Part shown: positions 8,803 through 28,300 of the stretch, in pieces
How the letters are laid out: each line of letters starts with the position of its first letter
Numbering within the stretch: the stretch's first letter is position 1
NCBI GenBank assembly: GCA_950097015.1
Contig: CATNEN010000012.1
Span: 3,720,001-3,784,000 of the forward strand
Reading direction: 5' to 3'
From: Macrostomum hystrix
Lineage: Eukaryota > Animalia > Platyhelminthes
DNA length: 64,000 nucleotides
The notes under the pieces: generated by a model
The model's database searches: none
What the model was told of the DNA's origin: nothing
The model's input: only the letters and a program-made list of their open reading frames with translations
Translations under genes and position numbers: made by a program

Positions 8803-11800
8803 CTGATGTGCAAGTATAATGCTGACGCCTCCTGGTGACGCAGCAGCAGCACCTGCATCAGACTGCGCTCTCCTCGGTCGGCTCGGTGAGCCGCGCCCCC
8901 CGGCTGCGGCTGCAAAAGTCAGCACCAAAGTGAGACGGGGCAAGCGGAGCGTTCGGCGTCGGATTGAGAGGCGTCGTGAACGGAATCGCAGAGGCCGGCT
9001 GCGCGGATCCAACATGCGCAGCCAGCCCACCCCGTCCACTGAGGATTTGGATCTGCCGGGTGGCGCCGGAGACCATGAGGCCCAATGTCAGCGGGCCCCA
9101 GCCGTACCAGACTGCACGCTTAGATTGGCAACCTTCAACTGCCGCACTCTGAAGGCAACCTGGCGAAGAGGATTGGTTGCCCAACTCGCCCAAGATCTGC
9201 GTTTGGACATCCTGATGTTGCAAGAGCATTCCATCGTCAGCGGACCCAACTTGCAAGTGGAAGACCTTGGTGGCGGCTGGACACTGTTCTACACCTCCGC
9301 GGACAAGAAAGGACGTGGCGGGGTCGGTGCCCTTGTAAACCCTCGGCTGCGACAAAGCGTGCGCTGTCTCCCCCTGAGCCCCCGACTGATGCGGGTTGAC
9401 ATTCGCCTACGTAACCGCAACGCGCGCCTCTTCTGCGCGTACGCGCCGACAGCTGCCCACCCAGAAGAAGCTGGCAGGTTCTACGATCTCCTGTCGGCTC
9501 AACTAGAAACCATCGCGCAGCGAGACACTCTGGTGGTGCTTGGCGATCTGAATGCGGTGATGCGTCGATCCGCTAGCGCCCCTTATGTGACTTCACGCGA
9601 GAATCCAAACACTGATGCGCTGGTGAGTCTGACAGAGCAGCACGATCTGGTGTCTGCAAATACCACCTTCCGCAAACCTGCCAGCCGGCTCGCGACCTTT
9701 ACCGGCTGTAAACGGAGAAGGCGAAATGCAACCGGCCGTAACGCGACTTGCAGGCTAGCGCAGTTAGACCACGTGCTACTGCGCACTCGCGAACGCCGCC
9801 GAGCATTGAATTGCGACACCGTCAGACCACTGGCCGTGGGGTCAGACCATAAGTTGCTGTTCTGTGACTTGCGTCTCCGTGACCCCCTGTACCGACCACC
9901 GAAGAAAAGACCGAGGCGTTTCTTTAGAGCACTGCGGAACCCAGCAACTAGGAACCGCTTCTCTCGCGCCTTCTCCACCGCGCTGGGCGACACCCACAAC
10001 GCTCAGTATGGTGACATATGCGACGCAATCCACACCGCGGCGGAAAGCACGCTACCACTCGTGCGTCCACCGCAGCGCTCACAACCAGTGTGGATGAGCG
10101 ACCCAGCGATCAGAGAGGCCCAAGATCGAGTGCAGCGACTCAGGAGGAGCAGGCACACAACAGACGAGGCGGAAAAGGCCCTCGCCATTGTCTACAAAGA
10201 GCAGCAGCTGGCTGCCGTGAGCGAGGCCATCCGCGCCGTCACCTCCGCCGCCCCGGACAGGAAAAGCGGCACCGTGTGGACTGCCATCAACACCCTCACT
10301 GGCAGGAAGCAACGCACGGCGCTCAACCTGGTTGGGGACACGCCGGATGAGCGCAAGAACAGCCTGCCGGACTTTTTCGCTAGCATAGTGAATGCGCCAC
10401 CACCTGCGCTCCTTGATGTGCTGGCGCTGCCCCCTGACACGCCACTGCCGCCTCCGCATCATTTCTGTACCGGCCATGTGACCGCAATCGATGTTTGTCA
10501 GCTCGCCAAGAAGATCCCAGGCGGCAAGGCAACGGGTCCCGACGAAGTTCCCAACGAGGTGCTCAGACTGCCCAAGGTCGCCCAGGAGATCGCCAGGGTG
10601 ATCAACAACGTTCTCGATACTGGCGTCGCACCTCCGGAGTGGACCCGAGCACATATCGTCGGAATCCCCAAGAAGCCGGGCACCAACAAGATTGAAGAAC
10701 ATCGGGGCATCTCCCTGATGTCCTGTGCCGCCAAGCTGCACAACAAGCTGCTACTGTCGCGCTTGCAGCCAGTGCTGGACCCTTACCTGCGGTACGAGCA
10801 GAATGGGTTCCGGCCACGACGTGGTACAGTCACGCAAATTCTGGCGCTCCGGAGAATTATCGAGGAATCGCGCATTCGCCAGTCGGACCTTTTCTGTCTG
10901 TTCATCGACTTCCTGAAGGCTTTCGACTCGGTGGCTCGAGGCGTGATTCCACTAGTTCTCCGAGCCTACAACGTGCCAGAGAAACTGATTGCAGCAGTGA
11001 TGGCGCTCTACCACGACACGCACGCTGCTGTGATCACACCTGACGGCCTTTCCGACTTCTTCACCACCTCATCCGGAGTCCTGCAAGGAGACACCCTCGC
11101 TCCCTTCCTGTTCATCCTCATCTTGGACTGGGTGCTGCGGACAGGACTACCGGACAACTCGGACGGCTACATCCTATGCAGGCGAACGAGCAGCCGGCAC
11201 CCGGAGAAGCGGCTGGCAGTCCTCGGATATGCTGATGACCTCGCCCTGCTGGCATCCACTGCTGCTGGTGCTCAACGCCTCCTCGACGGCCTAGCTGCTG
11301 CCGCTGCGAAGGTTGGCCTTAAGATCAACGCCAAGAAGACGGAGGTCCTGACTGTGCCAGCCGATCTGCCAGCGGTCATCCGCCTTCCCAGCATGGACAG
11401 CGCAACGGCAGCACCGCTCCCCCGATGTGAGCAGTTCCGGTACCTTGGTGGTCTCGTGCCCAGCGTCCAGGAGGACCTGCGGCGTCGCAGAGGGCTTGCG
11501 TGGGCGGCTTTCCGCTCAGTGCGCATCGTGCTCCAAAGCGACGCCCTGCCAGACCAGCTGAGAACCCGACTGTTCCAGGCGGTGGTGGAAACGGTGCTCT
11601 TCTACAACGCCGAGACCTGGACCATGACGGATGTGCTGGAGCGCCAGCTGGACGCGGCGCACTCCAGCCTGCTGCGCGCTGCCTTCAGCGTGCACCGTCA
11701 CGCCGAACACGTCACCAACCAGGCTCTCTACCAGCGGGCCAAGCTGAGCCCTCCCAGCGTGACCCTGCGACAGCGCCGCCTGAAGCTGGCGGGCCACGTC

Positions 11801-12058
11801 ATTCGCGCCGAGTCCTACTGCCCGGAGCCGCTGCAGGAGGTCTTGCTGTACACGCAGCAGGGCCCGTTCCGGCGGGGGCAGGCGCGGACCCGGAGGTTCG
11901 TCGACTGTCTGACAGAAGACGCCAGGGCGCCTGATCAGATCAATGGCGCTACCTTCATCAGAGACTGCGCAGCTAAGCGTGCTTTTTGACAATGTCCCCC
12001 CCTTTCCTGACCACTTGTGGCCGGTGGCCATTGTATTTATTATTGTATTGTATTATTG
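8536..12058 (+). mobile_element. RTE-clade non-LTR retrotransposon, apparently full length
   Basis: Single intact ORF, short 3' UTR ending in an (attgt/att)-type tail at 12030-12058, and candidate 12-bp TSD tagaagaatcag (8524-8535 and 12059-12070). The TSD is confounded by the flanking minisatellite. Confidence 0.88.
8819..11989 (+). CDS. RTE ORF: APE endonuclease + reverse transcriptase (1056 aa)
   Basis: APE motifs TFNCRTL, LQEH, YAPT, LGDLNA, LDHVL, SDH; RT motifs ATGPDEV, RGISL, QNGFR, DFLKAFDSV, QGDTLAPFLF, YADD, YLG; RTE-type C-terminal LAGHVIR. Confidence 0.95.
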   Translation: MLTPPGDAAAAPASDCALLGRLGEPRPPAAAAKVSTKVRRGKRSVRRRIERRRERNRRGRLRGSNMRSQPTPSTEDLDLPGGAGDHEAQCQRAPAVPDCTLRLATFNCRTLKATWRRGLVAQLAQDLRLDILMLQEHSIVSGPNLQVEDLGGGWTLFYTSADKKGRGGVGALVNPRLRQSVRCLPLSPRLMRVDIRLRNRNARLFCAYAPTAAHPEEAGRFYDLLSAQLETIAQRDTLVVLGDLNAVMRRSASAPYVTSRENPNTDALVSLTEQHDLVSANTTFRKPASRLATFTGCKRRRRNATGRNATCRLAQLDHVLLRTRERRRALNCDTVRPLAVGSDHKLLFCDLRLRDPLYRPPKKRPRRFFRALRNPATRNRFSRAFSTALGDTHNAQYGDICDAIHTAAESTLPLVRPPQRSQPVWMSDPAIREAQDRVQRLRRSRHTTDEAEKALAIVYKEQQLAAVSEAIRAVTSAAPDRKSGTVWTAINTLTGRKQRTALNLVGDTPDERKNSLPDFFASIVNAPPPALLDVLALPPDTPLPPPHHFCTGHVTAIDVCQLAKKIPGGKATGPDEVPNEVLRLPKVAQEIARVINNVLDTGVAPPEWTRAHIVGIPKKPGTNKIEEHRGISLMSCAAKLHNKLLLSRLQPVLDPYLRYEQNGFRPRRGTVTQILALRRIIEESRIRQSDLFCLFIDFLKAFDSVARGVIPLVLRAYNVPEKLIAAVMALYHDTHAAVITPDGLSDFFTTSSGVLQGDTLAPFLFILILDWVLRTGLPDNSDGYILCRRTSSRHPEKRLAVLGYADDLALLASTAAGAQRLLDGLAAAAAKVGLKINAKKTEVLTVPADLPAVIRLPSMDSATAAPLPRCEQFRYLGGLVPSVQEDLRRRRGLAWAAFRSVRIVLQSDALPDQLRTRLFQAVVETVLFYNAETWTMTDVLERQLDAAHSSLLRAAFSVHRHAEHVTNQALYQRAKLSPPSVTLRQRRLKLAGHVIRAESYCPEPLQEVLLYTQQGPFRRGQARTRRFVDCLTEDARAPDQINGATFIRDCAAKRAF

Positions 12059-12375
12059 TAGAAGAATCAGGCTTGCAGAATATTGCTAGAAGAATATTGC
12101 TAGAAGAATCAGGCTTGCAGAATATTGCTAGAAGAATATTGCTAGAAGAATCAGGCTTGCAGAATATTGCTAGAAGAATATTGCTAGAAGAATCAGGCTT
12201 GCAGAATATTGCTAGAAGAATATTGCTAGAAGAATCAGGCTTGCAGAATATTGCTAGAAGAATCAGGCTTGCAGAATATTGCTAGAAGAAGATTGCTTTC
12301 AAAAGATTGCCTGCAGAAGATTGCTAGAAGAAGATTGCTTTCAAAAGATTGCCTGCAGAAGATTGCTTGCAGAAT
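12059..12375. repeat. Continuation of the 14-bp minisatellite family after the RTE
   Basis: agaatattgctaga / agaatcaggcttgc units related to the 7014-8535 array. Confidence 0.9.
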
Positions 12376-12779
12376 ATGAATACACATTTTCGTAGGACAT
12401 TTGTATCTAGAATCAGATTGTTAGATTGAAGGCTGTCGAGTTAAAGTTTTTTATTGATAGTCTGTGATGTCCAAGGGACAGTTTTGTGCACTATAAATAA
12501 ATATTGTTAAGTCAGTGACACTCATGAGGCACATTAAAATGCCAGTCTAAGCTAAGCAAACACAGTTTAGCATTCCACTTTGTTAAGAAGAAGCTTTGGT
12601 AACGGAGGGACGGGAGAGCTACAGAGAGAAAGAAGGCCAGCGGTGCAGGCGCAGAGCCGAGTTTCAGGACTGTACAGTCAGTGTACATTGATGCGCAGCG
12701 CACATGGAGGCCAACCTCCTTCCCCAACAAGACCTATTAAAAAGACAGATACCAGTAACAGAATCAGTGCGAAGCGGCT

Positions 12780-15700
12780 ATGGAGAAGCGGATGAAGGAG
12801 CTGAAGCGGGCAGCGCTGCTCAGCGGCAGAGCCGAGCTGCCAAACGTCAGTCTGGCAGACTGCAACGCCTACAGCGACTCCACGGGGCCCCTGCACGCGG
12901 CCGCCATGAGCGACAACTTCGAGGCTGCCAAGAAGCTGCTTGAGGGTGGCGCCAGTGCCACCGCGGTCAGTCCGCAGGGCACCACGCCGCTGCACGTGGC
13001 CGCGAGGCACAACTCCGAGACGGTGGCGGACCTGCTGATTAAATCCGGGGCGGAGAGAATCGCCCTAGACGCTTCGGCCAGGTCGCCGCTCATGGTGGCA
13101 GCCGAGCTGGGCCATTCCAGCCTGGTGGAACTGCTGCTGCTGAAGGTGATCGCTGGATAAATGCGTGTCTGTTGATGGGTGGCATCTTTAGATCCATGCC
13201 TAACTTGTCTAACCGGCTGATCTGTCTAACAGGTTGATTTGTCTAACAGGTTGATTTGTCTAACCGGCTAATTTGTCTAACAGGCTGATTTGTCTAACAG
13301 GTAGATTTGTCTAACAGGTTGATCTGTCTAACAGGTTGATTTGTCTAACAGGCTGATTTGTCTAACAGGCTGATCTGTCTAACAGGTTGATTTGTCTAAC
13401 AGGCTGATTTGTCTAACAGGCTGATTTGTCTAACAGGTTGATTTGTCTAACAGGCTGATTTGTCTAACCGGCTGATTTGTCTAACAGGTTGATTTGTCTA
13501 ACAGGTTGATTTGTCTAACAGGCTGATTTGTCTAACCGGCTGATTTGTCTAACAGGCTGATTTGTCTAACAGGTTGATTTGTCTAACAGGCTGATTTGTC
13601 TAACAGGTTGATTTGTCTAACAGGCTGAGTTGTCTAACAGGTAGATTTGTCTAACAGGTTGATCTGTCTAACAGGTTGATTTGTCTAACAGGTTGATTAT
13701 TTCAGGGGGGATGCAGAAACCAGCCTTGCCTCCAGCTCTCTCCCAACAGACCCCAACCCTACCACCAGGATCCCGCATGCTCGGTAAACTTGGAGCTTCG
13801 CGACAGCATCGGTAACACCGCTTTGCACCTGGCCGCGGCCGGCGATCACCCGGAAGTCGTGCACCAGCTGGTCATCTGGAAGGCCAACCTGCTGGCGCTG
13901 AACGACAGCGGAGAGTCGGCATTGGACGTTGCCAAACGCTGCGGTGCTCGGCGAGTCATCGAGATGCTGGCGCCACGAATGCAGCACCTGCAGCAACTAC
14001 AGCAGCAGCAGCCGCCTGACAAGGTAAGTTGTCTGTTGCTGGGGCGAAGAGGGATGAACGAGCGGCAAGAGTCCATTTAGAGTTGAGCAAGAGTCTGCGA
14101 ATCAAGAATCGGTGAGGAGAGAATCTGTGAATCGGTGAGGAGAGAATCGGTGAGTCTGCGAATCAAGAATCGGTGAGGAGAGAATCTGTGAATCGGTGAG
14201 GAGAGAATCTGTGAATCGGTGAGGAGAGAATCTGTGAATCGGTGAATTGGTGATCAGAGAATCGGTGATCAGAGAATCGGTGATCAGAGAATCGGTGAAT
14301 CTGTGAATCGGGGATCAGAGAATCGGGGATCAGAGAATCTGTGAATCGGTGAATCTGTGAATCGGGGATCAGAGAATCTGTGAATCGGTGATTAGAGAAT
14401 CGGTGAATCTGTAAACTGGTGATCAGAGAATCGGTGAATCTGTGAATCGGTGAGCAGAGAATCGGTGAATCTGTGAATCGGTGAGCAGAGAATCGGTGAA
14501 TCTGTGAATCGGTGATCAGAGAATCGGTGAATCTGTGAATCGGTGATCAGAGAATCGGTGAATCTGTGAATCGGTGAGCAGAGAATCGGTGAATCTGTGA
14601 ATCGGTGAGCAGAGAATCGGTGAATCTGTGAATCGGTGATCAGAGAATCGGTGAATCTGTGAATCGGTGAGCAGAGAATCGGTGAATCTGTGAATCGGTG
14701 ATCAGAGAATCTGTAAATCGGTGAGCAGAGAATCTGTGAATCGGTGAATCTGTAAATCGGTGAGCAGAGAATCTGTGAATCGGTGAATCTGTGAATCGGT
14801 GATCAGAGAATCGGTGAATCTGTAAATCGGTGAGCAGAGAATCTGTGAATCGGTGAATCTGTAAATCGGTGAGCAGAGAATCTGTGAATCGGTGAATCTG
14901 TGAATCGGTGATCAGAGAATCGGTGAATCTGTAAATCGGTGAGCAGAGAATCTGTGAATCGGTGAATCTGTGAATCGGTGATCAGAGAATCGGTGAATCT
15001 GTAAATCGGTGAGCAGAGAATCTGTGAATCGGTGAATCTGTGAATCGGTGAGCAGAGAATCTGTGAATCGGTGAATCTGTGAATCGGTGATCAGAGAATC
15101 GGTGAATCTGTGAATCGGTGAGCAGAGAATCTGCGAATCTGCGAAAACGGTCGATTAGTATATTTGCGTGCAAGCGATATTTATGACAAAGCGAATTACG
15201 TAACCGCTTGGGGTTGTCTGAACTGACCAACCCAAGCGGCAGGAATAAAAGTGTACAATGTACACTCACAACCTTCACATCACTTTCCCCTCAGAAAGGG
15301 ATAAAAATAAATAATAATAAAAGTAGATAGCAAAGCGAGTTTCCCTCAGCACGAGCGGAAGAAGTCAGGACGTCGTCGATGTAGGCGATCACTTCCTCCC
15401 AGGTGAGGCCAGACATTATGAGCTCCATCATTCGCTGGTAGGTTGCGGGAGCATTGCACATTCCGAATCCCATTTTCCGGAACTGCATCAGGCCACTAGG
15501 TGTGTAGAAAGCCGTCTTTGGTCGATCCTCCTCTTTCAGCTCTACCTGCAGGAAGCCCTGGCGCAGATCGATTGTTGAAAACCACGAGCAGCCGGCCAAG
15601 GCGTCCAGAGCTTGATGTAGATGTGGGAGCGGATGCGCATCTTTTACTGTGAGGTCATTGAGCGCGCGCCAGTCAACGCAGATGCGGATATCGTTGTTCT

Positions 15701-18700
15701 TTTTCTTAGCGACGATGAGGTTGCTGGCCCAAGGGCTGGTTGAGGGCTCAATAACCCCATTCTGCTCCATCAGCCTCAGCTTCTCTTCGACCGGCTTCCG
15801 TAGCTGCAGCGCAAGACGCCTCGGTCGCTGTCGTACAGGACGTGCCGATTCATTCAGCTGGATCTGGTGCTGCATTCCGACTGCCGAGCCGAGGTCGAAC
15901 TCATGCTGGGATACCGTGTCCATGTAGTCCTTCAGCAGGTCAGTCAACTGCACCTTCTCGCTGCATGCTAGACTAGAGTTGATGTTGAAAACTTGGTCAC
16001 CAGGCTCCCAGCTGTGAAGCTCGCCGTTCTCTTCGACTGCCTCAGCGCCCTCGAATGTTCCCATCGACTGGTTGGGGTAGAGCAGCACCGGCTCGCTTCC
16101 TAAGTTGCACACGCGCACCGGCAGCTCGCCTGCATCCGTCGACACCGCAAAAACACGGCATGGCAGGAGGCCGGATCGGTCAATGAAATCTTGGGTCGGC
16201 TCAAAGACGCCTTTAGCGCCAACAGCGTCCACCTTGACGGTGACGACCTTCACAGAGCGGGCAGGAAGCAGCACCTGGTTGGTCGTTGGCACCAGGCGGC
16301 AGGCAGGGATAGAGCCGGGATCCATCGTGCTGTAGGGCATGCTAATGTTGTCGAAGTCCACCATCTGGTTGCGTTGGTCGATGCGGAACTCGTTGGCTGC
16401 GGCGGTGCCGATGAAATCCATGCCGATGATGTAGTCCGGCCGGATGCCTTTTACTACCAGAGCCGTGATGTCGCGGGCCAGGCAGTCTCCTAGCGTGACT
16501 TTCAGCTGCGTGCTTCCGACCAGGTCGAGTGGTGAGCCGTCAACGGCAACGGGCCTGGCATCGGGCGCTTTGAGCTCGCCACGCAGCCTTCTGAATGCCG
16601 CTTCGCTGATGAGGGAGCTCTGCGCACCTGTGTCGAGGAGCCAGTGGCACGGTATAGTGTTCGCACGGCCGGGGATAAAAACAGACAACTTGCTTACAGA
16701 GGAGGCTGGTGGGACCTGAGAGGTGCCACCAGCCCTTAGCAGTTTCCCTGGTTCGGCTTGGACGGACAGACAGCGGCGATGTGGCCCCTTCCGGAGCACT
16801 TGCGACAGATCACGTTCGAGGTGCTGCCCGCTGAACGGCACTGGGCAGCCAGATGTCCGGGCTTGCCGCAGTTGTAACAGCGGCCTGCTGGTCGACCTGA
16901 ACGCCTGCCCCGCCCGGGCTGCAGCTGCACGCGGCCGATGAGCTCAACCAGGCGCTGCTCCAGCCGTTCCAGACGGTCGTTCTGGGCCACCGCGACAGTC
17001 GCCTGCTGCACCCTTGGTAGTGGTGTGGACAGTTGCTCCAGCCGAGTCGCTCTGGACAGAAACACATCCAGGCTGCATGTTTCGCAGTCCTCACTCTTCA
17101 GCAGTGTGTTGCGGATGTCCTCAGGTAGTAGCTGTAGCAGCCGGAAACGAACGTCGCGATCGCGCTGGTCTGCAGTGTCCTTGGGTCGCGCTCGTTGATG
17201 TAGGAGCCGCAGTGCGTAGCAAAGCTCTCTCAGTGTCTCCGTGGCGCCTCGCTGACGGCTCTCGAACGAATACATGGCTTCGAAAGAGTCTGATTCTCCC
17301 CCGTACTGTGTTGTCAGGGCTGTTTTGAGCGTCTGGTAACTCTTTTATTTGGCTTCTGGCAAATCCCAGACGTACATCTGGGCTTCTCCAGTCAGTAGCA
17401 ACTTCCGTTTCCGAGCAGACTTGGCGTCGTCCCATTCAGCATCTTCGGCGAATTCTTCGAAGAGTCGCAGCCAAGTCCTTATGTCGGCCTTGTCAGTGCC
17501 AGAAAATTTTGGCGGTAACAGTGCACTGTTTGCCGTGGCCATGACTGTGCAGATTTTAGAGTTCGCTTAGCAAGAGTCACCGCTGCCACCAGTGTAAGAT
17601 TTGCGAAAACGGTCGATTAGTATATTTGCGTGCAAGCGATATTTATGACAAAGCGAATTACGTAACCGCTTGGGGTTGTCTGAACCGACCAACCCAAGCG
17701 GCAGGAATAAAAGTGTACAATGTACACTCACAACCTTCACACTGTGAATCTGTGAATCGGTGAGCAGAGAATCTGTGAATCGGTGAATCTGTGAATCGGT
17801 GAATCTGTGAATCGGTGATCAGAGAATCGGTGATCAGAGAATCGGTGAATCTGTGAATCGGTGATCAGAGAATCGGTGAATCTGTGAATCTGTAAATCTG
17901 CGATCAGAGAATCGGTGAATCTGTGAATCGGTGATCAGAGAATCGGTGAATCTGTGAACTGGTGATCAGAGAATCGGTGAATCTGTGAACTGGTGATCAG
18001 AGAATCGGTGAATCTGTGAATCGGTGATCAGAGAATCGGTGAATCTGTGAACTGGTGATCAGAGAATCGGTGAATCTGTGAATCGGTGAGCAGAGAATCT
18101 GTGAATCGGTGAATCTGTGAATCGGTGAATCTGTGAATCGGTGATCAGAGAATCGGTGAATCTGTGAATCGGTGATCAGAGAATCGGTGAATCTGTGAAT
18201 CGGTGATCAGAGAATCTGTGAATCTGTGAATCGGTTAATCGGTGAATCTGTGAATCGGTGATCAGAGAATCTGTGAATCGGTGAATCGAAGGCAGAACCA
18301 ATCGACTGATTTCCTTATCTCAAAACAATCACAGCCCGAAGGTCCAACCAGCGCTCTGGTGCTGTCGGTGCTTCAGAATCGAACCTGCGACCTACAGAGT
18401 GCGGACCTGGGCTTGCTGACAGGCAAGATGGCGGACGGCAAGACCCTGCTGCACTGGGCTGGCATTCGTGACTCGGCCGACTGCGCTGAGTACCTGCTCA
18501 CAACCGGGCTTAAAATCGACTCGCCCGACCGGACCGGCGCCACACCGTTGCACTACGCGGCTCTGAACGGTGCCGAGAAATGCTGCGCTCGCTTCATCTA
18601 CGCCCGTGCCGACGTCAACCAGCAGGAGGCCACGGGCGGCTTGACGCCCCTGATGATGGCCATCGACTCCGAGGCGGTGGCTGCGGTCCAGCTGCTGTTA

Positions 18701-19980
18701 AACACTGGCCAACTGAAGCTGGACATTGTCGACCGCGAAGGCGAGACGGCGCTGATGCATGCGGCGAAGCGGGGCAACGAGGAGCTGGTGCGACTGCTGG
18801 TGCACGAAGCAAAAGGCGACACCCGCCTACTGTCGAGGAAGAACAGCTCCGGCTTGTCGGCCATTGAGATCAGCGACCTGCTAGGCCACCGGAAGGTGTC
18901 CGAGCTGCTGGAGCCCTTCAGGCCTTCTCTGGACGTCTATCCCCGGCGATCGCCCAAGAACGGCTACTGCCTGGTGCTGAACCAGGAGTACAATTCTCCA
19001 AACTACAAGCACGAAGCGGACATGAACATGATGCGAAAAGGCTCGGAGTACGACGTAAAGAGGATCTTCGGCCTTTTCCAGGTAGATTTTCAATGACAAA
19101 ATGTATGAAGTCCTAAAATGATTCTACTCATTATTTAATAATTTTGTACTCCGAATAACTAATGTCATGCATCTCAACACAGGGCAAGCTGGGCTTCCGG
19201 GTGCACATGAGGCAAGACCTCAGCAGCGAGAATATGATTGCCGAAGTACGCAAGATCGCAAACAGTGGGGTTCTGGCCAGTGTGGACTACTTCGTGTGCT
19301 TCATCCTAGCGCATGGGCTGGGCAACGCAGTGCTGGGTACTGATGGCAAGCTGGTGGAGATTCGTGACATCTCTCTGCAGGCAAGGCCCACCGCCCCACA
19401 CTCCGCAGCCACCTCACTCCACAGCCGCCTCACTCCGCAGCCACCTCACTCCGCAGCCACCTCACTCCGCAGCCACATCACTCCACAGCAACCTCACACG
19501 TAACGCAGCCACCTGAAGCTGCTTAGGACTCACCCACTGGCCGGATTTCATATAATTTTTTTTCAACTCTTTTCCCAGGTGGACGCCGAGAACTGCCCGG
19601 ACCTAGCCGGCAAGCCGAAGATATTCTTCATCCAAGCCTGCAGGAATCGAGAAAACGACGGGCCACAAACCTACCAGGTGTCCACCGACGACCGAGCCTC
19701 AAAGCCACCGCTGAACGTTGCAGTGGCGAAGCACATTGACTACTTCTTTGGCTTTTCCACCTGGGAGGACTGTTACGCATACCGTTCGGCGCGTAGAGGC
19801 TCGCTGTATATCGAGAAGATGTACGACGTCATTGAAGAAAATTACGAGAAGATGGACCTGTTGAAGATGATGACTCGTGTGTGCCATGAGGTCGGATCTA
19901 CCCCCGTGCCTGGCAAGGGCTCCACCTGCTACATGGTGCCTGAGATCAAGAGCAGCCTGCAGAAAGATGTCAAGTTCTAA
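12780..19980 (+). CDS. Ankyrin-repeat prodomain caspase (about 10 ANK repeats + caspase p20/p10), 676 aa
   Basis: Five phase-0 exons: 12780-13145, 13706-14023, 18335-19081, 19183-19380 (GC donor), 19579-19980. ANK motifs GPLHAAA, TPLHVAA, SPLMVAA, TALHLAA, SALDVAK, TLLHWAG, TPLHYAA, TPLMMAI, TALMHAA, SAIEISD. Caspase motifs GYCLVLNQ, RKGSEYDV, ILAHG, LAGKPKIFFIQACRN, DYFFGFST, YAYR, GSLYI. Confidence 0.88.
13206..13697. repeat. 17-bp minisatellite (caggctgatttgtctaa) in caspase intron 1
   Basis: About 29 copies filling the intron. Confidence 0.95.
14095..15139. repeat. Composite gaatctgt/gaatcggt/gatcagagaatcggt minisatellite, caspase intron 2 left arm
   Basis: Visible tandem array, interrupted by the Gypsy element. 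Confidence 0.92.
15291..16748 (-). pseudogene. Gypsy pol fragment (aspartic protease + RT truncated just after YIDD)
   Basis: LLDTGA, IIGMDF, SPWASN, RICVDWRALN, FSTIDL, KTAF, FGMCNAPATYQR, YIDDVL, then non-RT sequence. Lies in the -1 frame relative to gag with G GGA AAC at 16742-16748. Confidence 0.9.
16736..17542 (-). pseudogene. Gypsy gag with in-frame premature TAA at 17345-17347
   Basis: MATANSALLPPKFSG...LPEAK*KSYQTL...MYSFESRQR continues in one frame to two CCHC knuckles (CYNCGKPGHLAAQC, CRKCSGRGHIAAVC). Confidence 0.88.
17742..18284. repeat. Right arm of the intron-2 minisatellite
   Basis: Same units as 14095-15139. Confidence 0.92.
19395..19500. repeat. 16-bp minisatellite (gccacctcactccgca) in caspase intron 4
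   Basis: About 6 degenerate copies. Confidence 0.75.
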
Positions 19981-20360
19981 TTCAAACTAAATGGCGGCAT
20001 GCTTATGCTCTTTTGTTTACCTTACAGTGCGAAATGCCAAGATGTCTTTGCAACTCGATTATTCAATCAATAATTTGCGCCAATAATTTTACTCTTGCAC
20101 CGTGCCGACTATTTCAGTGTATCTTTTCTACAGAACCTAGTTTGCCAGATTTCAGGCCTGAAACAAATTATCCGTTATTTTACAGTAGCTATACTCGTAG
20201 TGCATATGCGATTATCGTAGTCCTATACACTTATCCAGAATCGGAAACTTACGTTGTTTTTCTAGTCTTGCACGTTTATTTTGCTATTAAAATTTTCTTA
20301 ATCTGTACCTGTAGTACATCTCTACAGTCGCCTCGCTGCCAATTGACTACTAACCGTCAC

Positions 20361-21532
20361 GTCACTTTCTCAGCCTGGCATAGCTGTGTGCTAATCTATG
20401 TAGCAGCGGCACCCAAACCCGCCACCTCACTTTCTCAGCCTGGCATAGCTGTGTGCTAATCTATGTAGCAGCGGCACCCAAACCCGCCACCTCACTTTCT
20501 CAGCCTGGCATAGCTGTGTGCTAATCTATGTAGCAGCGGCACCCAAACCCGCCACCTCACTTTCTCAGCCTGGCATAGCTGTGTGCTAATCTATGTAGCA
20601 GCGGCACCCAAACACGCCACCTCACTTTCTCAGCCTGGCATAGCTGTGTGCTAATCTATGTAGCAGCGGCACCCAAACACGCCACCTCACTTTCTCAGCC
20701 TGGCATAGCTGTGTGCTAATCTATGTAGCAGCGGCAACCCCAAACCGGCCACCTCACTTTCTCAGCGTGGCATAGCTGTGTGCTAATCTATGTAGCAGCG
20801 GCACCCAAACCCGCCACCTCACTTTCTCAGCCTGGCATAGCTGTGTGCTAATCTATGTAGCAGCGGCACCCAAACACGCCACCTCACTTTCTCAGCCTGG
20901 CATAGCTGTGTGCTAATCTATGTAGCAGCGGCACCCAAACACGCCACCTCACTTTCTCAGCCTGGCATAGCTGTGTGCTAATCTATGTAGCAGCGGCACC
21001 CAAACCCGCCACCTCACTTTCTCAGCCTAGCATAGCTGTGTGCTAATCTATGTAGCAGCGGCACCCAAACCCGCCACCTCACTTTCTCAGCCTGGCATAG
21101 CTGTGTGCTAATCTATGTAGCAGCGGCACCCAAACCCGCCACCTCACTTTCTCAGTCTGGCATAGCTGTGTGCTAATCTATGTAGCAGCGGCACCCAAAC
21201 CCGCCACCTCACTTTCTCAGCCTGGCATAGCTGTGTGCTAATCTATGTAGCAGCGGCACCCAAACCCGCCACCTCACTTTCTCAGCCTAGCATAGCTGTG
21301 TGCTAATCTATGTAGCAGCGGCACCCAAACCCGCCACCTCACTTTCTCAGCCTGGCATAGCTGTGTGCTAATCTATGTAGCAGCGGCACCCAAACCCGCC
21401 ACCTCACTTTCTCAGCCTGGCATAGCTGTGTGCTAATCTATGTAGCAGCGGCACCCAAACCCGCCACCTCACTTTCTCAGCCTAGCATAGCTGTGTGCTA
21501 ATCTATGTAGCAGCGGCACCCAAACCCGCCAC
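20361..21532. repeat. 65-bp minisatellite, about 18 near-identical copies, between caspase and IBTK 3' ends
   Basis: Unit starts at 20421 and 20486 (period 65); no spacers. Confidence 0.95.
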
Positions 21533-22393: not shown

Positions 22394-25300
22394 TCATTCA
22401 ACAGTTTTCTTTTTCTGCACAATCGGCCAGAGAGGCTGTGCGCAGGCTTCGCTGCAATAGTCTACGGTAATTCTGCACTCGTATCGGCCGGAATCGTCGC
22501 TCAAGTAGAGCTGCTTCAACTCATTAATGGCAGCCTCTTCAATCTGAAACGGATATTTTTCGGAAGAAACACTTGCTGTACTAAATACATGCTTTGATAA
22601 CTTTAGAGTACATTCATTACTCTCCAACACACTGAAGTGCATAGCCCATCAGCCAACGCACCTGGATGAGATGCAGCGGTTTCGATAACCGCCGCCTAAG
22701 CACAGCCTGCTCAGCCTCGGCCGATGCCACAATCACTTTGAAGTTAGGCGACGCAAGCGTTAAATCTGTCGGCGCCTCGCTGTCGGGATAGTCAACAACT
22801 GGCACCGAGGTCGATGGCGGGGATGTTGATATCAGCGACGGCGGCGGCAGCGGCTTCCACGGGTTGCCAACGGTCTGTGACGGTGAAGGTCTAGACGGGG
22901 TTGGCGGCGAGCTAGCGGTGGCGGCGGCGGTGCTGGACGACTTCCGCTGGCGCTGAGACTGCCGCTTGAAAGCTGGCATCGAGACGCTGGAGGGCGTCGC
23001 AAGTGTCGCGGCAGTCGGCGCCGATTTCGACTGCATCTCTTCGGCCATGATGTCAGAGAGAGACGGTCGTGGATCTGCCTCATTGCTGACGATGGGAATT
23101 GAGTGTGTCTCACTGCTAGTGGCTGTTGCTGGTGACTTTGGCGGCGGTGACTGCTGCTGCTGCTTTAACTGTTGCGACTTGCGCTCACGTTGTGACTGCC
23201 GTTTAAAAGCTGCCAGGCGTCCGCCGGCAGCCGGTTGAGCCTCCCGATCTACAGCTGCTGCGGCATGGGTATTTTGCTGCTTTGCGGCACCCAGCAGCAG
23301 CCTGGCGGCGTAGCTAGCGCCACATGGCCTCGGAGGCGGAGCCGACAACTCATCTTCTGCGTCTTTCTCTTCCAGCAGTTCAGAACCAGCCACGCCAGGA
23401 GGAGTTAGTTCAGGCGACTTGACCAGCACGGCAGCAACTGGAGCGCATTCCGACTGAGACGTCGACAGGCTGCTGCCCCGACTCCGTCGCTGCCTCGCTG
23501 TCAACGCCTTGCCGACAACGACAGCATCAGCGACGACGACTGCTGAGGATGGCGTTGGCGGCGTCGGCAACGGAGTCTCGTCCGAGACAACTCCAGCCAA
23601 CCAGCGGTCAATCACTCGGCTGAGCCTCTCTCTTTGGTCCTCGTTGCCGATTGGCTGGAAGCGTCGGCCAGACGGTCGCAGCCGGCAGCGCAGATCGCGG
23701 CCCAAACAGGCGAGCAGGCCGGCGGGCAGGCGGGCCAGGCAGAGCCCGGCCAGCTCCAGCAGCGCCGGCAAGTTGTTGGCGGCGAACTGTCGGCAGGCGG
23801 CCAGCAACCGGTCGGCATTGCGGCTATCGGCCAAGACGGCCAGGCTGGCGAAGCTGCGCAGGTGAAGCCGCTGCGCCAGAGCGGCCTCGCTGGCCAGCCG
23901 GAGGCCTGGCAGCTGCAGATAGTCGGCCGAGTCCAGCAGATCCGGCGCCGGATCGTCCGGACTGTTCGGACTGCAGACGCTGGAGCTGCCGGTGTAGATG
24001 AAGTCCAAGATGCGGCTCAGCAGGCTAGCCGGGTAGGGCAGGCTCAGGCAGGCTGATGAGGTCTCTCGCCAGCCGCCGTGGCTGGACATCAGCATGGCGT
24101 CGAAGTAGTCGGAGCGGGCTGCCATCAGAGCGGAGTGGCAGAGCCAGCGCTTCGGTTCCAGCTGCGGCTCGACCGACGATTGGATGGTGAGGTCCGCAAA
24201 GTGGGCGGGGCCGGGACTGCAGCGGCTGATGGCTAGAGGCCTGCGGTTTGGGCTACGTGCAGATAGAAATGACTCCATGGACTTGGGAGAGATGAGACAG
24301 GAGAGAGATGAGAAATGAGAGATGAGAGATAACACAGGGGAGAGATGAGACACGGCAGAGATGAGACACGGGAGAGATGAGATGGGAGAGTTGAGAAATG
24401 AGAGATGAGAGATAACACAGGGGAGAGATGAGACACGGCAGAGATGAGACAGGGGAGAGATGAGAGAGATAAGCTTAAATCAATGGGCTACAAGCTCTGA
24501 AGGGAGCAGCCCAGAATAATTTAAAGGAAGGAACTCGAGGTCTCAATTTAAATTGCGAATCACTCACGGATCAGCTTCGAATCGTTGCATTTTGGCTGAC
24601 TTTAGGCGCAGAGCTTTGCAAGCATCGGCGAGACGCCCGCCACCGCCGCCGCCGCCGCCCTTGCCGCTGTACAGGTAGGTGAGAAGGTTAAACAGCTCAG
24701 CGCCAGTGAGAACATCGCTAGAAATCACAGCTAGATCAGGACTAGATTCAACCAATCGAAAGAATCGATTAGCCGAGTCCTGGCTATCAGGGCAATGCTC
24801 GCTAACCAGCCAGTCTGCGATCAGAGCTGACCGATCAGCCAGTAGAAATCGATGCGCCGATATGGAAACGCCATCGACGCCGACAAATCTCAGATCCACA
24901 GCTGTGCCGCCGTTCACCAGCAGGCCAGCCAGACAGTCGGACAATTCAGCCGCAGTCAGTGGCGCCGGCGGATCCGGCAGGTCGGTGAGGAAATGCCTCG
25001 GCGATAATTGCAAAGCGGCAAATGTGCGGCCGCGCGGATCGGCAAAGAGTGACGCTGCGCGGTGCAGACCAGGGATCGAGTCCGCCGGAGCGATCAGTTG
25101 CGAATTAGCCGATGCCGACGCCGACAGTGGGGCGAGGCGAGTAGGCGAGGCGAGGTCGACGCGGTAGCCGCGGCCGCGATCAGTGCCGATTAGCAGGATT
25201 CGGTGGGTCAGACAGGCGCTGGTGATCATACCCAGAGGTGCGGGCCGCGGACGCAGCCGGAGGGGCTGACGGCGAGATGGTACCAGTTCGGAACATTGTT

Positions 25301-28300
25301 CAGTAAACTGTATATCTGACTGCTATTATTATAGTTTTACAATTTCTGGTTTGAAGTCCCTAGTGTTTAAGAAAAAAACTCGTAGACTCATTCTCACCTG
25401 TTGCCAGCCTGGTTGCCATAGATACAATTCGCCGGCTATAGTTAGCAAGCACGCTGTCAAACTGCGGCCGAAATGTGACGGATCGTCAGCCAGCAGCACG
25501 ATGCGCAGACCGCTCCACTTTGGCGCCAGGTTGGTCACCTGTCATTTCTTAGTTCTTGCTGTTAAAAGCCACTCATACAGGTATTCTAATTCACTATTTA
25601 GTTCTGGAGTCGACAAAATTCCGCCAGCACAGCTCCAAGTCAGCCGCTGGCCCTTCACAACTTATCTATTACCGTCTTATCTCTCCCGAGTCTTATCTCT
25701 CTTGTATCTAATCTCTCCCGTGTCTTATCTCTCCTGTATCTCATCTCTCCCGTGTCTTATCTCTCTTGTATCTAATCTCTCCCGTGTCTTATCTCTCCCG
25801 TGTCTTATCTCTCCCGTGTCTTATCTCTCCTGTATCTCATCTCTCCCGTGTCTTATCTCTCTTGTATCTAATCTCTCCCGTGTCTGATCTCTCCCGTGTC
25901 TTATCTCTCCTGTATCTCATCTCTCCCGTGTCTTATCTCTCCTGTATCTCATCTCTCCCGTGTCTCATCCCTACCGTATCTAATCTCTCCCGTGTCTTAT
26001 CTCTCCCGTGTCTTATCTCTCCTGTATCTCATCTCTCCCGTGTCTTATCTCTCCTGTATCTAATCTCTCCCGTGTCTCATCCCTACCGTATCTCATCTCT
26101 CCTGTGTTTTATATCTTCCATGTCTTATCTCTCCCGTTTCGCATCTCTCCTGTGTCTCATCGCTCGCCTTTCTTATCTCTCCCGTGTCCCGTGTCGCTAC
26201 ACTATCAACCTAGCCTCTATTCTGTTGTCGTCTATCGAATTCTCTCTCTAGTGCTCTCAATGCAAATCAGATTGCCGAAGCCAGAATTAGAATCGCTAAA
26301 TATTTTTAAGTAGTCAAGCCAAGCAAATAATCAGAACCAACCTGTCCAGAGTGCAGCAAGAGTAGGCAGTGATCCCGCTGCTGCTGCTGCTGCTGCCTAT
26401 GCCGTTCTAGGTGCACCAATAGGGCTGAGTCGCAGCTAGCCCAGGCTAACACGCTGACGCTGCCGCCGCCGCTACCGCTACTAACACCAATAGCGGAGTC
26501 CCAGAGGGCTGAAGAACTGTCTTGCTGCTGCTGCTGCTGCGGCTGGTTATGACGGTGCATTTGGGACACGCAAGCCAGAGGTGTAGGTCGGGTCACTAGC
26601 CTTGGCTGCTGCTGCTTTAGCAGAGGATGGCCGAATTGCCCGCGGTCTTGGCCCCAGACAAAGACCTGCAGTATTGTATGGCAAGAGGGAGCAAGTGAGC
26701 AGGTGGAACAGGTAAGGCAGTCAGAATCAATACAGACTAAGAAACGGTTTAGATAGACTCATTAAAGAAAGGCTAAGAAAAGTGTTAAGACACGCTAAAA
26801 AACTAAAGGCTGGAATAGGTGAGACAGATTGTAACAGGTAACAACTGTAACAGAGAAGTTAGAGCTGAAATGTGCTTAAAGGGTAAAACAGACTCGAATA
26901 GGAAATGTGTATTTAAACAACTGTAGAAATACTGCATTTAAACACACTTATAGAGAGGTTTCGAAGGGGGGTGAGTGGCAGAGCGGTCTAACGCGTTTGC
27001 CTCTCGCACCAACGTCCCTGAGCTCGATTCCGCGGCGAGGCCACATTAATTTAGGTTGCAGCCACGGAGAGAAGGCTTGGGGCTTGTCGTGCAATTTACC
27101 CCATTGAGGGCTAACCTAAAAGGCACAGTTGAGAGTGTACACTGCCTGACGATTAGAAAGTCAGGGCAGATGTACGCTCGTACACCTGTGTGAGTGCGTG
27201 CCTACGTACGGTATCTGTGTGCGTGTGTACTCAGCCAGCGAAATGGGCAGAATTGCCTGCTCGCTGGTTGCGGGTCCAGTGTCACCAAATGATGGGCCAT
27301 TGCCCGCAGCCCTCCTGCAATTACTATTACTATTGAGATTTAGAAGACATGTGATTACCCGAAGCCAACCAAGATATACCTGAGAATCAGTGACAACCAT
27401 AGAGTGGTATCTGGCCGCCGAGATGCCAAGAATGCGTCGACCCGGCTCCGGCCGCCAGCCAGCGACGGGACGTGGCAGATGCTGCTGCTGCTGCTGAGAT
27501 CCAGCAACACCAGTAGACCCGAGGACGACACCAGCGGAGGCAGCGGGGTCGCAGCCAGCCAGCCAGAGCCGGCCGGACCTGGTTAACATGAGAGTGTGCT
27601 CACGGCCCACTGACACTGCTCGGACGGGATCCGACTGCGGCAGCTGAGCAGGCAGTGGCAGCGGGGTCGGCTCGGCGGCAAGAGAGGCGGCCGACGCTGC
27701 CAGACCCAGCCGGTGCTGGCCGAAGCCGCAGACAAAGACGCGACCGTCGGCTGTCAGGAATGCGCTGTGATAGACTCCTAGAGAGACGCCGATAACGCCA
27801 GCATCCGGCAGGCTTGACACGAGTTCGGCCCGACAGTCAGAGTGGCCGGTCAGGCGGCCCAGGGTGTGGTTGGCCGCGTCGCCCCAGGTGTAGGCGTCAT
27901 AGCCTGGGCAGGCTTCGGCCGGTGAGCCGGGCAAAGCTGCCAACGAGGGTACATCAAGCAGAGTGGCCAAGTCTATAGGCGTCAGGCCGTCGTGGTCTAC
28001 TGACGCCAGACTGGCATTTGCGGACTGGTGGAAATGTTGGAGACAATCCACAGATGTACTGTATACAGATGCTCAGCCAGAACAGGTTGCCAATGTTCTT
28101 ATATTGCCATTTTTCTCACTCGCCCTTCCTCTCCAGCTCTCGCCCTTCCTCTCCAGCTCTCGCCACTCCTCTCTAGCTCTCACCATTCCTCACTAGCTCT
28201 CGCCCTTCTTCTCCAGCTCTCGCTCTTCTTCTCTAGCTCTCGCTCTTCTTCTCTAGCTCTCGCTCTTCTTCTCTAGCTCTCGCCCTTCTTCTCTAGCTCT

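Follow-up and report, generated by a model that had tools for sequence, protein, structure and literature searches.

Gene structure and transcription of the locus

The window, that is, the whole 64,000-nucleotide stretch of Macrostomum hystrix DNA that was analysed (contig CATNEN010000012.1, positions 3,720,001 to 3,784,000), contains one real, expressed flatworm gene in which ten ankyrin (ANK) repeats are joined to an intact caspase-8-like protease. Its coding sequence is divided over five exons, all in phase 0, with a joined length of 1,968 nt, and specifies a protein of 655 aa in which two five-repeat ANK blocks, with a Q-rich linker, precede a complete Peptidase_C14 domain. A preliminary description of this DNA had proposed five phase-compatible exons, and all five were found where it had placed them; the four donors and four acceptors are all of the GT-AG or GC-AG type. 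The features of the locus are as follows (positions are those of the window).

12780-13145, forward strand: exon 1, with the start codon, N-terminal cap helices and block 1 ANK repeats 1-3 (aa 1-122); open reading frame, GT donor at 13146, Pfam Ank_2 match (E 1e-27)
13146-13768, forward strand: intron 1 (GT-AG); lacking in the M. lignano ortholog, whose exon 1 runs through
13769-14023, forward strand: exon 2, with block 1 ANK repeats 4-5 and the start of the Q-rich linker (aa 123-207); Pfam Ank match, acceptor ending in ccaccag, donor beginning with gtaagt
14024-18334, forward strand: intron 2 (GT-AG, 4.3 kb), with a satellite and a retroelement; recognised by tandem repeats, direct repeats and retroelement domains
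18335-19081, forward strand: exon 3 (aa 208-456), which completes the linker, encodes the five repeats of ANK block 2 and opens the caspase p20, Arg441 included; Pfam Ank match, single open reading frame
19082-19182, forward strand: intron 3 (GT-AG, 101 nt); absent from M. lignano, whose exon 2 runs through, and spliced out in contigs
19183-19380, forward strand: exon 4, core of the p20 and site of catalytic His500; covers positions 35-101 of the Pfam Peptidase_C14 profile
19381-19578, forward strand: intron 4 (GC-AG, 198 nt); seen in spliced contigs
19579-19980, forward strand: exon 5, with the QACRN active site, the VSTDD-containing intersubunit linker, the p10 (Arg591) and the stop codon; covers positions 107-232 of the Pfam Peptidase_C14 profile
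19981-20391, forward strand: 3' untranslated region, minimum extent, from contig ends

Transcription was assessed over 18217-20400, beside the intron 2 satellite, with contigs from public runs that are not recorded as RNA and were read as such because the introns are missing from them. Two studies, represented by three runs and one run respectively, yielded spliced contigs with the joints 19081>19183 and 19380>19579. The exon 3-4 joint, skipping intron 3, is present in contigs of runs X4, X5, X6 and X1, and the exon 4-5 joint in X4, X5 and X6, where it was placed at 19377>19576 with four ambiguous letters and is equal to 19380>19579. Exon 3 is covered by contigs at 100% identity, and the loose end of the contigs before 18335 corresponds to the last 30 nt of exon 2 in at least X4, X5 and X6, thereby joining exons 2 and 3. 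A single transcript spanning 13145 to 19980 had been anticipated; its joints 2-3, 3-4 and 4-5 were thus observed directly in contigs. For exons 1 and 2 the evidence of joining is indirect and consists of the length of contig sequence upstream of 18333 (617-622 nt versus the 619 nt expected from the ATG) and of the contiguity, within one M. lignano exon, of the residues on either side of this point. The contigs start close to the ATG (within 3 nt) and, extending beyond it by 3 nt or less, speak neither for nor against a trans-spliced leader; their 3' ends lie at 20066 (X6), 20207 (X4) and 20391 (X5).

Intron 1 is filled from 13205 to 13698 by a 17-nt tandem repeat, and intron 2 holds an 8/31-nt satellite of the GTGAATCG type. 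A truncated LTR-type retroelement in minus-strand orientation (15137-17741) breaks up this satellite; it has zf-CCHC gag, aspartyl protease and RVT_1 domains and is bounded by direct repeats of 143 nt (15137-15279 and 17599-17741; 99% identity). The M. lignano intron at the intron 2 position measures 307 nt. Intron 4 contains six copies of the 16-nt unit CTCCGCAGCCACCTCA, and both its position and the identical repeat unit are common to the M. lignano ortholog.

The satellite and retroelement within the 4.3-kb intron 2, together with an exon 1-2 splice that is inferred rather than directly observed, could be taken to mean that exons 1-2 and exons 3-5 are separate genes, or that the model is an annotation artefact or a pseudogene. 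This is very improbable, since the end of exon 2 is joined to exon 3 in contigs of four runs, refuting a split at that point, and since exon 3 by itself fuses ANK to caspase sequence within one open reading frame (18281-19096). Furthermore, the gene and its M. lignano ortholog are colinear over their whole length, with matching start and stop codons, and an intact reading frame with a dN/dS below 1 argues against a pseudogene. The earlier proposal of one gene linking ANK and caspase exons is therefore borne out by the joints between exons 2 and 5 and by the composition of exon 3.

The ankyrin prodomain and the active site

Pfam Ank families were matched in exons 1, 2 and 3, and a home-made ANK HMM identified 4+4 strong repeats. 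In the AlphaFold model of the M. lignano ortholog (65% identical), 5+5 ANK helix pairs are predicted with low-confidence linkers between them; HMM and model combined give eight strong and two capping repeats, in agreement with the all-ankyrin prodomain of about ten repeats that had been described previously. CARD or DED gave no Pfam match in any of the five exons, PF01335 being absent from each, as that description had also held. Aligned in register, blocks 1 and 2 are 32-34% identical, a closer fit than out-of-register alignments give; judged by this alignment, the prodomain is a tandem duplication of a five-repeat module (5+5). The polyQ linker reported between the blocks is present as QHLQQLQQQQ at the end of exon 2.

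The gathering score of PF00656 is exceeded by two matches in the protease domain, one in exon 4 (E 1.6e-8, positions 35-101) and the other in exon 5 (E 1.8e-21, positions 107-232), and the ortholog covers profile positions 2-232 (E 7e-44). Catalytic His500 (19312-19314) lies in ILAHG, which aligns with caspase-8 ILSHG via the ortholog, and catalytic Cys543 (19639-19641) lies in QACRN. The S1 residues, defined as Arg179, Gln283 and Arg341 in caspase-1 numbering, are present as Arg441 (RKGSEYD), Gln541 and Arg591 (YAYR). Read through the ortholog, Arg441, His500, Cys543 and Arg591 align with caspase-8 Arg260, His317, Cys360 and Arg413; this enzyme is also the best solved-structure match (E 1e-27). 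The retention of the catalytic and S1 residues, and of an STDD motif in the intersubunit linker (within VSTDD), had been noted before and is upheld by these comparisons. The canonical QACxG pentapeptide is not matched, the motif reading QACRN here and QACRT in M. lignano; as the final Gly is not catalytic, this represents a deviation rather than an exclusion from the caspases. On sequence grounds, the caspase fold, the His-Cys dyad and the S1 residues are intact, and Asp-directed activity is predicted.

Orthology, selection and phylogeny

Using single exons or the M. lignano ortholog as queries in database searches, the nearest proteins were all found to derive from M. lignano. The closest relative is Mlig001045 (654 aa, 65% identity over the full length; exon 5, 71% identity to ortholog residues 522-654), represented by PAA73468.1, PAA58750.1 and UniRef A0A1I8GZW9 at 643-654 aa; these entries are annotated as hypothetical or as 'ANK_REP_REGION domain-containing'. 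A word search with the ortholog's caspase region returned four proteins, none of them from M. hystrix, so that the product of the present gene is absent from that collection within the length range covered. The two orthologs share the 5+5 ANK plus caspase layout with colinear start and stop (the start MEKR.K being kept), two phase-0 intron positions, the repeat unit in the common intron and a downstream gene neighbour of the Src type (SH3-SH2-kinase); the gene is single-copy in both species, and synteny links its locus to M. lignano contig NIVC01001010.1. Conversely, Mlig001045 has three exons rather than five, a linker without the Q-run, a 307-nt intron in place of the 4.3-kb one, a last intron of the GT-AG rather than GC-AG type, and QACRT instead of QACRN. 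The dN/dS against Mlig001045 is approximately 0.23 overall; it is lowest in the caspase domain (0.14), amounts to 0.20 and 0.30 in the two ANK blocks and is highest in the linker (0.84). These values are rough because dS is about 1 and thus near saturation.

Novelty of the architecture, as implied by the preliminary description, was not sustained. An ortholog of the same architecture was already deposited in NCBI and UniRef, and ankyrin-prodomain caspases have been published for flatworms: Schistosoma ANK caspases were reported by Lee et al. 2014, as cited in a 2024 study (PMC11463336) that named the flatworm type 'ANK caspase', proposed these enzymes as initiators sitting next to DED caspases and called them restricted to parasitic flatworms. 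The present gene is a member of this already published kind, and the architecture itself is not new. The restriction to parasites is, however, contradicted by the genes of free-living Macrostomum, where ANK caspases comprise the present gene and three M. lignano groups (Mlig001045, Mlig019067 and Mlig000705/009621).

In the phylogenetic tree, the present gene groups with Mlig001045 (100/99) and is then joined by Mlig000705/009621 (90/97). The neodermatan ANK caspases form a group (100/99) whose Macrostomum sister is Mlig019067 (89/95), not the present gene. A single clade of all 19 ANK rows is not rejected by the AU test (p = 0.52), and the free tree puts the present clade, which sits on long branches (0.74 + 0.74), in an open polytomy relative to DED, neodermatan ANK and effector caspases. 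What is particular to this gene is the duplicated 5+5 ANK module and its membership of a long-branch clade found only in Macrostomum. Among the best 150 matches of exon 5 against a library of 1.84 billion proteins there was no neodermatan ANK caspase; these were obtained only from a search with another query (P0025), the mollusc and vertebrate matches of which carry DED. A 1,588-aa M. lignano model (P0154) was considered as the 'kinase-prodomain caspase' of the 2024 paper and rejected, as it is without a kinase domain. Separately, the ESM Atlas listing contains putative arthropod and bacterial Ank + Peptidase_C14 clusters, which serve as a lead only.

The replacement of the last glycine of the pentapeptide in both species, together with the long branch, could indicate that the change from QACRG to QACRN leaves the protease weak or dead, its role being that of a c-FLIP-like scaffold or regulator of other caspases. 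This is unlikely, given that both species retain the catalytic His and Cys along with the full set of three S1 residues and that the caspase domain has the lowest dN/dS of the protein.

Proposed activation through the ankyrin blocks and comparison with known systems

The reading that we favour, and consider reasonably probable, is that this single, expressed and selectively maintained gene encodes a long-prodomain initiator ANK caspase that is recruited and dimerised via its ANK solenoids. The two five-repeat modules would stand in for death effector domains, the solenoids being candidate protein-binding surfaces that gather zymogens on a putative partner or platform. The resulting proximity would dimerise the caspase domains and, in turn, permit autocleavage at a candidate Asp in the intersubunit linker (between TDD and R here, and between PED and N in M. 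lignano), a segment that is poorly conserved and corresponds to a loop predicted to be disordered in the ortholog model (residues 544-571). Once activated, the enzyme would act as an initiator that cleaves its substrates after Asp, and this in a lineage from which FADD and DED caspases have reportedly disappeared. That dimerisation would activate it without a death-fold adaptor is plausible.

The ANK prodomain may instead be mainly autoinhibitory or substrate-selecting, docking onto the protein's own caspase domain or onto particular substrates, with the enzyme serving a non-apoptotic function, whether in housekeeping or in development, instead of that of an apical initiator. Work cited in PMC11463336 describes designed ankyrin-repeat proteins that bind caspases and inhibit them, the flexible linkers predicted to flank block 2 would permit fold-back, and the gene is found in contigs of every run examined from one organism. 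However, the nearest solved relative of the caspase domain is the initiator caspase-8 and the ortholog model has a pTM of 0.39, and we regard this explanation as rather doubtful.

Lower still is the probability of the reading put forward in the preliminary description, namely that the protein is a self-contained innate-immune death switch resembling RNase L, whose ANK arrays would directly sense a ligand (a small molecule, a nucleotide or a pathogen product) and bring about adaptor-free dimerisation of the protease. In its favour are the length and duplication of the prodomain and the purifying selection on it, the several family groups in Macrostomum and the fast evolution of the subfamily, as is often seen in immune genes; yet ANK repeats usually bind proteins, the dN/dS of the ANK blocks (0.2-0.3 between species) indicates no diversifying selection, and the gene is single-copy and syntenic in both species. 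It is equally improbable that the double-ANK caspases of Macrostomum are adaptor-free sensors in which the solenoids would bind a danger or pathogen ligand, or each other, and so dimerise the protease. Were this true, it would represent an independent route to initiator activation in a lineage reported to be without FADD and DED caspases, and would imply that ANK caspases predate flatworm parasitism.

How an ANK prodomain activates a caspase is a question that also concerns the schistosome and tapeworm enzymes proposed as drug targets. Macrostomum, which can be handled readily in the laboratory and is open to RNAi and transgenesis, is a practical model in which to address it. Together with the three M. 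lignano groups, the locus establishes that ankyrin-prodomain caspases exist in free-living, early-branching flatworms. The published view ties the origin of ANK caspases to parasitism and confines their replacement of DED caspases to parasites; it thus needs revising, since Macrostomum has ANK caspases and one of its groups is sister to the parasite clade.

RNase L possesses an N-terminal ankyrin-repeat ligand sensor and dimerises its effector domain. The likeness to the present protein would extend only to this general layout, an ANK array followed by a C-terminal enzyme needing dimerisation, whereas the effector is unrelated and the present protein is without a pseudokinase domain. Caspase-8 and the DED initiators share the aligned catalytic dyad and S1 residues, a long prodomain and a disordered intersubunit linker containing Asp; caspase-8 differs in having QACQG rather than QACRN and in carrying tandem DED, which the present protein lacks and without which FADD recruitment is not possible. 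The neodermatan ANK caspases (Schistosoma, Echinococcus, Taenia, Hymenolepis and Cichlidogyrus) share the N-terminal ankyrin prodomain without CARD/DED, the caspase-8-like C14 domain and a platyhelminth host. They differ in being 700-825 aa long and in having a single N-terminal ANK block, with 3-4 detectable repeats, followed by a linker of about 200 aa, whereas the present gene belongs to a free-living host and its duplicated 5+5 ANK module constitutes a further variant worth comparing.

Structure and transcripts of the gene

The preliminary description had proposed that five phase-compatible exons unite ankyrin (ANK) blocks with a caspase domain, and this was confirmed, as all five exons are in phase 0 (with a summed length of 655 codons) and the Pfam domains occur in order.

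Exons of the window gene
12780-13145, plus: exon 1; donor gtgatc
13769-14023, plus: exon 2; acceptor ccaccag, donor gtaagt
18335-19081, plus: exon 3; acceptor atcacag, donor gtagat
19183-19380, plus: exon 4; acceptor aacacag, donor gcaagg (GC donor)
19579-19980, plus: exon 5; acceptor ttcccag, stop TAA

Ankyrin families were assigned by Pfam to exons 1, 2 and 3, and Peptidase_C14 to exons 4 (profile positions 35-101) and 5 (107-232), giving the Ank + Peptidase_C14 architecture; neither CARD nor DED was matched in any exon, which bears out the earlier reading of the prodomain. Within a single ORF (18281-19096) the reading frame passes unbroken from ankyrin repeats into the first strand of the caspase (RKGSEYD), and the fusion is thus independent of any splice prediction.

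Seven public runs contain this stretch, and their reads were placed on 18217-20400. Three runs (one organism, one study) yielded one contig each (2.0-2.4 kb, 100% identity), all of which omit 19081>19183 (GT..AG) and 19380>19579 (GC..AG), the latter being placed at 19377>19576, an equivalent position given that four letters at the joint are ambiguous. The first joint was also present in one run of a second study, and the missing introns indicate that these runs probably represent cDNA. Upstream of 18335, the contig in each of the four runs matches the closing 30 nt of exon 2 (...CAGCAGCAGCCGCCTGACA), indicating that splicing removes the 4.3-kb intron between exons 2 and 3. The exon 1-exon 2 joint is predicted: contig letters upstream of 18333 number 617 and 622 nt, in agreement with the 619 nt that a transcript beginning at the ATG, with exon 1 spliced to exon 2, would supply. 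For a contig to have read instead through 360 nt of the intron-1 tandem repeat (17-nt unit) would be implausible. Separate genes for the ANK and caspase exons, which would have undone the earlier proposal, are contradicted by the contigs joining exon 2 to exon 3 and by the exon 3 ORF holding both domains; an artefact or separate genes is accordingly a most improbable explanation. This is an intact gene, both expressed and conserved.

The Macrostomum lignano ortholog and the surrounding repeats

A search of 1.84 billion representative proteins with exon 5 returned, as the sole close match, a 654-aa protein (71% identity across exon 5), the remaining caspases showing 30-45% identity. Its cluster consists of M. 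lignano proteins (Mlig001045; PAA73468.1, PAA58750.1), and it shares 65% full-length identity and the ANK + C14 architecture with the window protein. Among the best 150 matches, ankyrin repeats were present in only two others, Mlig019067 (599 aa) and Mlig000705/009621 (approximately 700 aa), both from M. lignano. At the M. lignano locus (NIVC01001010.1) the gene has three exons, both introns lying at the exact codon positions of window introns 2 and 4, and window introns 1 and 3 are missing. Based on this protein similarity, the two common intron positions and a common downstream kinase gene, the window gene is the ortholog of Mlig001045, and the window derives from a Macrostomum-type flatworm distinct from the sequenced M. 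lignano. The caspase-to-kinase gap measures 2.8 kb in M. lignano versus 34 kb in the window, where it contains two further listed genes; the dyskerin locus also lies within it.

Genes downstream of the caspase
54207-56927, plus (M. lignano locus 15341-19337): Src-type SH3-SH2-tyrosine-kinase gene, conserved neighbour
22620-24353, minus: BTB gene, in the enlarged gap
27164-28051, minus: RCC1-repeat gene, in the enlarged gap

From a codon alignment with the ortholog, an overall dN/dS of 0.23 was obtained (caspase 0.14, ANK block 1 0.20, ANK block 2 0.30, inter-block linker 0.84); these figures are rough because dS is about 1, although domains and linker still differ clearly.

Repeats and mobile elements around the gene
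8819-11986, plus: LINE ORF, 1,056 aa, AP endonuclease and reverse transcriptase
12054-12377: 14/28/42-nt tandem repeat after the LINE ORF
13205-13698: 17-nt tandem repeat TTGTCTAACAGGTTGAT, 29 copies, filling nearly all of intron 1
14045-15131 and 17744-18288: intron-2 satellite, GTGAATCG-type 8/31-nt array
M. lignano locus 10631-10807: matching satellite, TGAATTAG-type 8/24-nt array
15137-17741, minus: truncated LTR-type retroelement inside the intron-2 satellite
19399-19497 (M. lignano locus 11882-12182): 16-nt tandem repeat, unit CTCCGCAGCCACCTCA, in the intron between the His and Cys exons

The LINE ORF lies upstream on the strand of the caspase gene, and approximately 800 nt separate its end from the caspase start codon. 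Each TTGTCTAACAGGTTGAT unit carries an acceptor-like motif (AACAG/G), and intron 1 is absent in M. lignano. A similar satellite is kept in one of the two common introns (window intron 2) in both species, having grown to approximately 1.6 kb in the window. The retroelement within it carries 143-nt direct repeats (99% identity) at its two ends and encodes a zinc-knuckle gag, an aspartyl protease and a partial reverse transcriptase that breaks off after the YIDD region; neither RNase H nor integrase was seen within 15137-17741. The CTCCGCAGCCACCTCA unit is identical in both species (6 copies in the window, 19 in M. lignano), with coding dS at about 1; beyond these arrays the 16-mer is absent from both the 64-kb window and the 22.6-kb M. 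lignano locus. Where short contigs of the runs cover this repeat, they show mismatches and loose ends, indicating related repeats elsewhere in those runs. Every unit has CAG after pyrimidines, and the window intron has a weak GC donor; the repeat may possibly play a role in splicing.

Protein anatomy and candidate modes of activation

An ANK profile built for this analysis detected 4+4 strong repeats in both species, and in an AlphaFold model for the ortholog (mean pLDDT 71, pTM 0.39) residues 39-194 and 242-403 each form five helix pairs, with low-confidence segments between them, in keeping with the two blocks of about five repeats described previously. The model also has a disordered stretch ahead of the caspase and a disordered loop (544-571) at the intersubunit linker site. 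In-register alignment of the two blocks gives 32-34% identity and takes in the irregular junction of the third and fourth repeats and the C-terminal caps. It scores 61 bits versus 42 for a one-repeat shift, which suggests that one five-repeat module was duplicated in tandem.

The best solved relative of the caspase domain is human caspase-8 (E 1e-27). Through pairwise alignment with the ortholog, Arg441, His500, Cys543 and Arg591 correspond to caspase-8 Arg260, His317, Cys360 and Arg413, so the His, Cys and S1 Arg residues recognised earlier are indeed kept. Judged by its residues, the caspase-8-like domain is catalytically complete, and it is preceded by two conserved ANK solenoids and joined by flexible linkers. 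The pentapeptide reads QACRN in the window gene and QACRT in M. lignano, the usual final Gly being absent in both; QACRN could mean a weak or dead caspase serving as a scaffold, which we regard as unlikely. One linker Asp is kept in position (TDD/R in the window protein versus PED/N in M. lignano).

On balance, we lean towards an initiator activated by recruitment. The ANK modules would dock the zymogen on a partner protein or a platform, where proximity would lead to dimerisation of the caspase domains, followed by autocleavage at a linker Asp and Asp-directed cutting of downstream targets. An ANK region that is instead autoinhibitory or substrate-selecting is rather unlikely, and the direct ligand sensor originally proposed has a poor chance of being correct.

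Relation to known ANK caspases

A 2024 study (PMC11463336) restricted ANK caspases to parasitic flatworms; M. lignano was sampled there, with only a kinase-like-prodomain caspase, 'no other unexpected pro-domain' and no ANK caspase given for it. M. lignano groups that combine Ank with Peptidase_C14 number at least three in NCBI and UniRef (Mlig001045, Mlig019067, which UniRef names 'Caspase-8', and Mlig000705/009621), and the parasite-only restriction is contradicted. Within the paper library searched, no other publication connects Macrostomum, caspase and ankyrin. The preliminary interpretation stands as regards one gene with an all-ankyrin prodomain and a caspase that keeps its key residues, while the novelty it implied is unsupported, since flatworm ANK caspases were already published (Lee et al. 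2014, cited in PMC11463336).

A word search from the Mlig019067 caspase domain retrieved ANK caspases of Schistosoma, Trichobilharzia, Cichlidogyrus, Hymenolepis, Echinococcus, Taenia and Anoplocephala. A tree was inferred by maximum likelihood from 42 caspase domains, with a Condylostylus tandem-caspase protein omitted. In it, the window gene and Mlig001045 pair at 100/99 and join Mlig000705/009621 at 90/97 on long branches; the Neodermata form one clade (100/99) with Mlig019067 as sister (89/95). These Macrostomum and neodermatan ANK lineages form a polytomy with DED caspases and several short ones. One clade of all 19 ANK caspases was unrejected by the AU test (p = 0.52), the constrained tree being 0.24 log-likelihood units better, and the data are therefore compatible with an ANK prodomain that arose early and only once. 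Separately, clusters annotated in the ESM Atlas as Ank + Peptidase_C14 come from arthropods (a 55-member cluster whose representative has 951 aa) and bacteria (Thermodesulfobacteriota, Nitrospirota), which hints at possible independent fusions beyond flatworms.

The window gene is of the known ANK-caspase kind. Neodermatan members have a lone N-terminal block in which 3-4 repeats can be detected, in contrast to the window protein, whose duplicated five-repeat module is its particular feature.
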